Of a stretch of 64,000 bases of DNA, positions 46,687-47,262 are shown one piece after another (the first letter of the stretch is position 1; each line of letters opens with the position of its first letter). The notes beneath the pieces were generated by a model, which was not told where the DNA came from, searched no databases, and saw only the letters and a program-made list of their open reading frames with translations. The stretch comes from Selaginella moellendorffii (Eukaryota; Plantae; Lycopodiophyta), in assembly GCF_000143415.4 (NCBI RefSeq), contig NW_003314386.1:42852-106851 (forward strand). The letters are read 5' to 3'. Position numbers and translations under genes: made by a program.

Positions 46687-47088
46687 ACGGGATGACAGCG
46701 ACTGGTCCAGACGGCGAGATCCATGAGTCAACGGATAGCGATCAGGTTGAGCATGTTCCTTAGCTCTAATCTTTGGAAGTCACTTCTGATGTGCGGCCCG
46801 GGCATGTCCCTGAGTACATTGGCTCGCGAGCATCAGTCGTGCAAATCTCAGTTCAGTTTTGAGACCTAGCTTCGTACTTTCACAAAATGAGAGATAGAGC
46901 TAGCGGAGATTGCATTACTAATCCTCGTCTTCCATGATACAGGTACCCCCCGGACACCCAAACCGTAGGAGGTGACATAGGAATTGTTAAGGGAAATCGT
47001 TTTGGTCGTGGTCGGTACCGGGTTACCGGGCGGATGATCCTATGCCTCGGACGAATGTACCGAAAACGGCCTAGTCGATCTGCTTAAC
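46687..47088 (+). repeat. Terminal pseudo-LTR (direct repeat of 20533-20934)
   Basis: 402-bp partial sixth unit ending in the target-like sequence. Confidence 0.88.
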
Positions 47089-47262
47089 AAAAATGGCCCA
47101 CTTGGAGCTCAGATTCAAAGGTCGGGGTTCAGCCGGAGCAACCCCGACACCTTACCTATTTAAATTTTGAGAATAGGTCGAGGGTGTTTCACCCCCAATG
47201 CCTCTAATCATTCGCTTTACCTGATAAAACTCTCAATTTGAGCTCCAGCTATCCTGAGGGAT

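Follow-up and report, generated by a model that had tools for sequence, protein, structure and literature searches.

A heritable target-like tail may favour insertion of an endonuclease-less Penelope-like element at one 26S rDNA site in Selaginella moellendorffii

The window, by which we mean the whole stretch of 64,000 nt analysed here, is part of scaffold GL377690.1 of the S. moellendorffii assembly GCA_000143415.2 and has identical letters. It contains an array made up of a 409-nt partial unit and five full units of 5228 or 5235 nt, arranged head-to-tail on the plus strand. Rfam searches place the host 26S gene on the minus strand, so that the element is inserted in antisense, and show the gene to be split by the array between LSU model positions 1170 (window 47060) and 1171 (window 20505), with no rRNA matches within the array. 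The units abut directly, telomeric tracts between them are absent, and the array is flanked by 26S rDNA. The left flank terminates in ...CAGTTCTGC at 20532, and the element begins at 20533, which corresponds to unit position 4820. Each full unit comprises a 522-aa ORF1 and a 710-aa ORF2 that encodes a reverse transcriptase (RT). The features of the locus are as follows.

19282 to 20532, minus strand: left-hand flank of 26S rDNA, about 1171-2388 of the LSU model, ending ...CGCCAGTTCTGC (Rfam and sequence)
20528 to 20532, plus strand: left-junction TCTGC, which recurs where the tail begins, an apparent 5-bp duplication
20533 to 20941, plus strand: first unit, a 5'-truncated, pseudo-LTR-like partial copy, unit positions 4820-5228
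20925 to 20941, plus strand: target-like tail copy 1, 17 nt, TCTGCTTAACCAAAAAT, exact match
20942 to 26169, plus strand: unit 1, 5228 nt, with a 1.37-kb 3' UTR that ends in tail copy 2 (26153-26169)
21045 to 22613, plus strand: ORF1 of unit 1 (CxCxCxxC protein)
22669 to 24801, plus strand: ORF2 of unit 1 (RT)
26071 to 26152, plus strand: hairpin-rich conserved stretch directly 5' of the tail, hammerhead-like with a non-canonical core (CgGAUGA..GGAcGAAu..GAAAA..GUC)
26170 to 31404, plus strand: unit 2, 5235 nt, tail at 31388-31404, ORF1 broken by a 2-nt indel
31405 to 36632, plus strand: unit 3, 5228 nt, tail at 36616-36632
36633 to 41867, plus strand: unit 4, 5235 nt, tail at 41851-41867, ORF1 broken
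41868 to 47094, plus strand: unit 5, closed by the junction form of the tail
47079 to 47094, plus strand: 3' junction tail TCTGCTTAACAAAAAT, with the element's extra A present and one C fewer than the unit tail
47095 to 47869, minus strand: right-hand flank of 26S rDNA, beginning with GGCCCACTTGG, about 359-1150 of the LSU model

For two indels the units follow an A-B-A-B-A pattern, and any two of them differ at 17 to 46 sites; they are therefore related copies, unfit to be counted as five independent witnesses. Ten further S. moellendorffii scaffolds were reached via annotated proteins, and the eleventh locus, L038, lies inside the window. The window units are about 99% identical to units on these other scaffolds. 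The rDNA around the window array is decayed, its right flank being 84% identical to that of L001, and identity is 96-97% for the window's pair of 18S copies. A decayed flank combined with near-identical units implies either that the element entered an already dead rDNA copy or that the arrays were homogenised. Differences between the 26S flank (window 47095-47240) and L001:13367-13500 include hairpin-preserving changes (TCGGGG...CCCCGA as against CCGGGG...CCCCGG); the genome may hold two diverged rDNA types beyond mere decayed copies.

Other parts of the window are rearranged as well. A plus-strand partial rDNA unit at 8654-12103 (18S, 5.8S and 26S model positions 24-664) ends at about 12062, where it abuts intergenic-spacer repeats belonging to the other orientation, which marks the window as decayed and rearranged rDNA and no working array. 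At 9840-10142 the plus-strand 18S carries an insertion of ~305 nt between GCGGCTTAATT and TGAC, with 33 bp of 18S sequence (GGCACCACCAGGAGTGGAGCCTGCGGCTTAATT) directly duplicated on its two sides. This insertion may represent a short non-autonomous element whose target-site duplication is unusually long. An ORF of 743 aa with RVT_1 and zf-RVT domains (L1-type LINE) at 16393-18624 adjoins the point at which the 26S gene breaks off (model position 2388, window 19282). The intergenic spacer contains a 5S rRNA gene at 53642-53759 that shares the strand of the 18S-26S unit, a linked arrangement.

The element of the array has been published as 'PLE-X' of S. moellendorffii, a Penelope-like element (PLE) of the Chlamys clade that lacks an endonuclease, and both the element and its rDNA habit were already known. 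The sister family in S. tamariscina has its target 4 bp away. Its ORF2 is 100% identical to SELMODRAFT_427748. The main text of Craig, Yushenova, Rodriguez and Arkhipova (2021, PMC8557442) describes PLE-X from two spikemosses as Chlamys-clade PLEs that have the CxC motif and lack GIY-YIG, with an N-terminal extension that bears a CxC...C motif. As far as that description goes, the array shares with it the CxC RT, the lack of GIY-YIG, the CxC...C extension, head-to-tail copies and the use of one 28S/26S position. The authors reported a single precise 28S target and called the mechanism open; in the main text of that paper, a target-like tail does not appear as a possible explanation.

In an alignment of 17 clade members, the RT motif residues C98 and C100 (CxC) and D225 and K226 (DK) are invariant, and Pfam detects RVT_1 in 15 of the 17. 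A profile of the RT protein yielded no match among PDB sequences. ORF1 contains the cysteine cluster ...YCRCDCQGC..., of which the CxCxxC core (C334, C336, C339) is invariant in 24 sequences; an exhaustive HMMER search gave 62 relatives, with conservation mostly in residues 310-425. In its AlphaFold model (pLDDT 63), helices predominate beside a small cysteine knuckle, and there was no structural match among PDB chains at E <= 0.001, which speaks against a hidden nuclease of recognisable type in ORF1. Pfam searches, which do not reach unrecognised nuclease types, found neither GIY-YIG nor any other nuclease domain in ORF1, ORF2 or the 17 clade members. The original prediction, made from the letters of the window, had spoken of a cut rRNA-sense strand; with no nuclease found in either ORF, this cut was an assumption.

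The 17-mer TCTGCTTAACCAAAAAT occurs exactly five times in the window, at 20925, 26153, 31388, 36616 and 41851, with a spacing that alternates between 5228 and 5235 and agrees with its description as a part of every unit. With 0.01 matches expected by chance, we rejected a chance origin. The motif had been taken for an internal mimic of the 26S target, which proved mistaken: it closes each of the first five repeat copies (the partial unit and units 1-4) and is followed directly by the start of the next unit, ACCCGCGAGGG, and so constitutes the 3' terminus of each unit. A sixth copy, at the right end of the array (47079-47094), reads TCTGCTTAACAAAAAT and runs directly into the 26S sequence GGCCCACTTGG.

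At the target, the eukaryotic LSU consensus in Rfam reads ...GGGCCAcUuuUGGUAAGCAgaAgUGGCG, which on the strand of the element corresponds to TGCTTACCA, without the extra A. The tail thus equals the 26S target read on its antisense strand with a single A added, matching in 16 of 17 bases, and the claim that the empty site is a one-base indel away stands for the consensus. None of the 40 loci examined contained an empty 26S site of S. moellendorffii; the canonical site was taken from the Rfam consensus.

The tail recurs at unit boundaries on other scaffolds (L001, L002, L004, L006, L037 and L039), and is intact at the boundary in L004, L006 and L039, of which the latter two are 90% and 94% identical, respectively. 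It is also found at the 3' ends of L003 and L004, copies that lie outside rDNA. In an old copy at L037, which is 71-74% identical to the unit (about 27% diverged), it reads GGCCTAGTTGA TCTGCTTAACCAAGAAT, and 26 of the 28 terminal bases are kept where about 20 would be expected (binomial P about 0.007-0.013). The extra A is present in every copy, the oldest included, and the tail is therefore not refreshed from the target at each insertion. Since the target lacks this base, we rejected read-through from the target as the whole story. Together with the lack of rRNA within the array, the tails in L003, L004 and the diverged L037 copy bear out that the mimic belongs to the element, and to judge from the copies compared, the tail is a heritable part of the element that would be inherited through its RNA. 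Further, the copies begin on their 3' side among the final A-rich bases of the tail, and do so next to any kind of flank. Since cDNA synthesis appears to start there irrespective of the flank, the template RNA most likely ends in these bases.

We found five 3' junctions in rDNA (the window, L001, L002, and a young and an old copy at L037), and all are in register (...AAAAAT followed by GGCCCAC), with the tail joined to GGCCC(T)ACTTGG. At L001, L002 and the young L037 copy the full tail is followed by GGCCCACTTGG; at the old L037 copy, TCTGCTTAACCAAGAAT is followed by GGCCCTACTTGG. The hybrid end of the array and the TCTGC at its left junction, both pointed out originally, are present in the window but particular to this copy, the full 17-mer being found at four other rDNA junctions. 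As all five 3' junctions retain the element-type TTAAC(C) with the extra A, the crossover between target and element lies to the right of that base, within CCAAAAAT. Pairing between primer and template is thus compatible with the junctions over at most the last 8 nt, CCAAAAAT, and the pairing of ~16 nt that had been envisaged is too long. The junction in the window, which lacks one C, fits a slip or a later mutation inside these terminal 8 nt.

The 5' junctions differ. The rDNA ends in ...TTCTGC in the window, in ...CGCCA at L002, in ...CCAGT(TC) at L037 and in ...TTCTG followed by 8 unassigned bases at L005, and the element starts at unit positions 4820, 4972, 1855 and 974, respectively. The left joins are ragged over 7 nt, the other junctions lying 1 to 7 nt before that of the window, and the truncation points of the units there are random; the left flank of L005 represents the same 26S position as the window insertion. 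Because the rDNA ends and the unit start positions both differ, the rDNA insertions read as separate events, each joined precisely at the 3' side and raggedly at the 5' side. A precise 3' side combined with a ragged 5' side is the usual signature of target-primed reverse transcription. Since the right flanks of L001, L002 and L037 are identical over at least 68 nt, some of the junctions could nevertheless have been spread by rDNA recombination instead of repeated insertion. Partial-tandem arrangements like that of the window occur in L001, L002, L004, L037 and L039.

Copies outside rDNA limit what the tail can be held responsible for. At L003 the 3' end reads ...TTAACCAAA, continuing into TTTACTTTC, and at L004 ...TTAACCAATAA, continuing into CTTCC; neither flank shows complementarity to the tail. 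We considered whether non-rDNA copies sit in decayed rDNA and rejected this, as the flanks of L003, L004, L006 and L039 have no similarity to rDNA beyond that of shuffled sequences. For L040, whose 3' end reads ...TTAACCAAAA followed by CATGG, the similarity of the right flank to rDNA is borderline (74 of 2000 shuffles score equally well). Because L003 and L004 were inserted without complementary flanks, pairing of the tail is not required for insertion, and the tail may, on a counter-reading of these two copies, set only the start point of cDNA synthesis and leave the choice of site to something else. The proposed RNA-guided choice of target is partly supported by the five in-register joins and, in its strict form, contradicted by L003 and L004. 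A comparison of 3' junctions, suggested as a check on that proposal, likewise gave a divided answer, with five rDNA joins in register and three copies (L005, L006 and L039) that terminate at other element positions, probably through later truncation.

Two observations on these loci may be added. Two separate old copies, at L005:12573 and L039:14509 on different scaffolds, share an internal end at unit position 4636/4637 (...CCTGGCCAC), past which the sequence is unrelated. At L040:9835-9865, a full-length copy opens with a 19-nt 5' extension, GATCTGCTTAACCAAAAAT, which starts exactly at GATCTGC, corresponding to the point right after the GUC that precedes the unit tail, and is itself preceded by CTGCTTAAA, a further partial copy or look-alike of the tail. 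This extension hints at an element RNA that carries the tail at both ends; a 5' end at GAUCUGC would give it a terminal redundancy of 19 nt.

Hammerheads have been reported for PLEs of S. moellendorffii in two papers, among them PMC8557442, which states that the PLE-X terminal repeat contains a canonical hammerhead (supplement S2). While that paper, in the parts that concern PLE-X, gives canonical hammerheads for the family, we found none in the present copies: Rfam gave no hammerhead match at E <= 10, either for the whole unit or for 700 nt around the unit boundary, and motif scans found no complete hammerhead. Nothing relevant to a hammerhead or other ribozyme at the boundary came from these Rfam searches and scans. 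The degenerate look-alike directly 5' of the tail (CgGAUGA...GGAcGAAu...GUC) does not match the covariance model. The sense strand contains a single CUGANGA, at unit position 153, where a long helix II is present and helices I and III are missing; this CUGAUGA ... GAAA arrangement with a 9-bp helix II (window 21094-21170, unit 153-230) lies inside the 5' end of ORF1 and is conserved in every copy. RNAalifold, applied to nine copies, predicts a long hairpin in which the left half of the tail pairs with upstream bases and the A-rich end is free, with 4 compensatory pairs and a single-sequence z-score of -1.4. Such a predicted hairpin, for which the backing is weak, would fit the 8-nt limit on pairing.

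Taken in its strict form, the pairing idea fails, because L003 and L004 share the tail and have flanks without complementarity. A softer form, in which pairing favours and registers insertion into 26S, is partly supported. We consider it somewhat better than even, with a probability of roughly 0.55, that the tail is a docking and priming sequence that favours the one 26S site of PLE-X. In such a scheme the element RNA would end at ...CCAAAAAU, and a free 3'-OH of the rRNA-sense DNA within ...GGGCCATTTTTGG would pair with at most the terminal 8 nt of the tail, to be extended by the RT of the element; given the antisense orientation, the geometry agrees with the original proposal that the 3' end of the rRNA-sense strand would prime. 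The remainder of the tail, extra A included, would be copied from the RNA and take the place of the bases present in the target. The head-to-tail array could be built by template jumps that lead from one RNA's 5' end onto the tail of another RNA, and the 5' end would finally be joined imprecisely a few bases leftward, with a loss of 3 to 10 target bases. Further points count against the docking reading, besides L003 and L004, the shared right flanks of L001, L002 and L037, the lack of an empty site among the 40 loci and the predicted pairing of the left half of the tail with upstream bases. It needs a site-specific break, which no nuclease found here explains: the clustered left junctions suggest a defined lesion, yet there is no recognisable nuclease, and this is the weak point of the model. 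Further, the hammerhead that the analogy with Athena would lead one to expect beside the tail was not found.

A stronger version would make the 17-nt tail the main or only determinant of targeting, with the RNA 3' end serving as a guide that captures DNA 3' ends in the loop-coding stretch of 26S; two 8-nt half-sites flanking the bulged extra A may then bridge the two sides of the break. We regard this version as rather unlikely. If the tail were the sole guide, rewriting it would redirect insertion.

Alternatively, targeting could be directed by protein: ORF1 or ORF2, with their zinc-binding CxC and CxCxCxxC motifs, or a recruited host nuclease would recognise and nick the 26S site. The tail would then be a read-through relic of the target flank that at most sharpens the register of initiation, in the manner of downstream 28S sequence in R2. 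The left junctions of four separate events lie within 7 nt, which fits a defined break, and ORF1 with its invariant cysteines is conserved in distant relatives. R2 starts without pairing between template and primer (PMC11194090), and the non-rDNA copies begin at the same tail position, unpaired. Against this stand the lack of a Pfam nuclease domain in ORF1, ORF2 and the 17 clade members and of a PDB match for the ORF1 model at E <= 0.001, as well as the near-intact tail of the ~27% diverged L037 copy, which is unexpected for a passive relic. We hold protein-directed targeting to be possible but not probable.

Target-primed reverse transcription could also be dispensed with if free cDNA or array DNA annealed through the 16-nt homology and was thereby taken up at a double-strand break, with unequal crossing-over spreading the inserted rDNA units, so that the recurrent in-register junction would represent few events. 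The right flanks shared by L001, L002 and L037 over at least 68 nt, the A-B-A-B-A higher-order pattern, which is typical of DNA-level duplication, and the decay of the flanking rDNA (84% to the L001 flank, 96-97% between the 18S copies) are in line with such repair or recombination. However, the four 5' junctions and the internal structures differ, pointing to several events; the old and young insertions at L037 are in the same register; and the non-rDNA copies share the end position in the tail, a better fit to initiation defined by an RNA end than to capture by homology. We hold an origin by repair or recombination to be quite unlikely. Least credible, and in our view very improbable, is that the tail pairs with 26S rRNA itself and that an rRNA or pre-rRNA fragment ending in the target loop primes the RT, the resulting rRNA-cDNA chimera entering rDNA by homology, or holds the RNP at rDNA under transcription. 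As the element invariably lies antisense to 26S, the tail of its RNA is complementary to rRNA, and the target core forms a hairpin loop in the Rfam structure line, but no test made here favours RNA priming, and the ragged 5' junctions at one site fit a local DNA break.

The docking reading has close counterparts among known systems, and its telomerase-like aspect, put forward in the original prediction, extends the accepted model for other endonuclease-less PLEs and introduces no new principle. The 3' ends of Terminons and Athena carry reverse-complement telomeric repeats that base-pair with the G-overhang (PMC6431247). Telomere-docked endonuclease-less PLEs with hammerheads in S. moellendorffii itself would be in line with Gladyshev and Arkhipova (2007, as cited in PMC12477314). 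Athena, Coprina and Terminons share with the present element the lack of an endonuclease, the head-to-tail chains and a 3' stretch of template RNA complementary to the strand that supplies the 3'-OH. In those elements, docking uses telomeric repeats right after the hammerhead, the natural chromosome end supplies the 3'-OH, and telomeric tracts separate the copies, which sit at chromosome ends, whereas here a unique internal rDNA site is copied, no hammerhead was detected and the break must be made or found. R2 and R1 resemble the element in their use of one 28S position and their imprecise 5' junctions. They possess a site-specific endonuclease of their own, insert in sense orientation and are co-transcribed with rRNA; the present element, in contrast, is antisense, has no recognisable nuclease and carries the target-like bases heritably within itself. 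For R2, downstream 28S sequence on the RNA affects the choice of primer (Luan and Eickbush 1996, as cited in PMC11194090). Telomerase has a PLE-related RT and aligns a DNA 3' end on a short complementary RNA before copying, as would the element; it copies a few bases repeatedly from a dedicated RNA, whereas the element would copy a whole 5.2-kb RNA once or several times.

A heritable, target-identical tail turns the question of targeting, which PMC8557442 called open, into a concrete experiment that can be carried out. It connects site-specific interstitial insertion with the PLEs that dock at telomeres and, by way of these, with telomerase. Should pairing suffice, the element would represent natural RNA-specified insertion by an RT without a nuclease; if it is insufficient, the tail would be another case of 3' target homology that sharpens initiation, as in R2.

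Among the relatives, a second S. moellendorffii family (L007, 42% aa identity) lies outside rDNA and has a 3' end without similarity to rDNA. A 33%-identical relative on a 1.18-Mb ENA contig (L008) ends in ...GCATTTTTT outside rDNA and has no rDNA-like tail. At 28 metagenome loci there was no rDNA, and short rRNA matches were at chance level. These relatives fit the pattern of no tail where there is no rDNA habit, which falls short of a real test of covariation between tail and target.

Two observations concern telomere-like sequences in the 3' UTRs. Every unit of the array contains a perfect 20-nt palindrome, AAACCCTAACGTTAGGGTTT (window 25311-25330), that presents the plant telomere repeat on both strands; a telo-box or a remnant of docking at telomeres are possible readings. 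Several CCCTAAA motifs also occur in the 3' UTR of the second family, L007.
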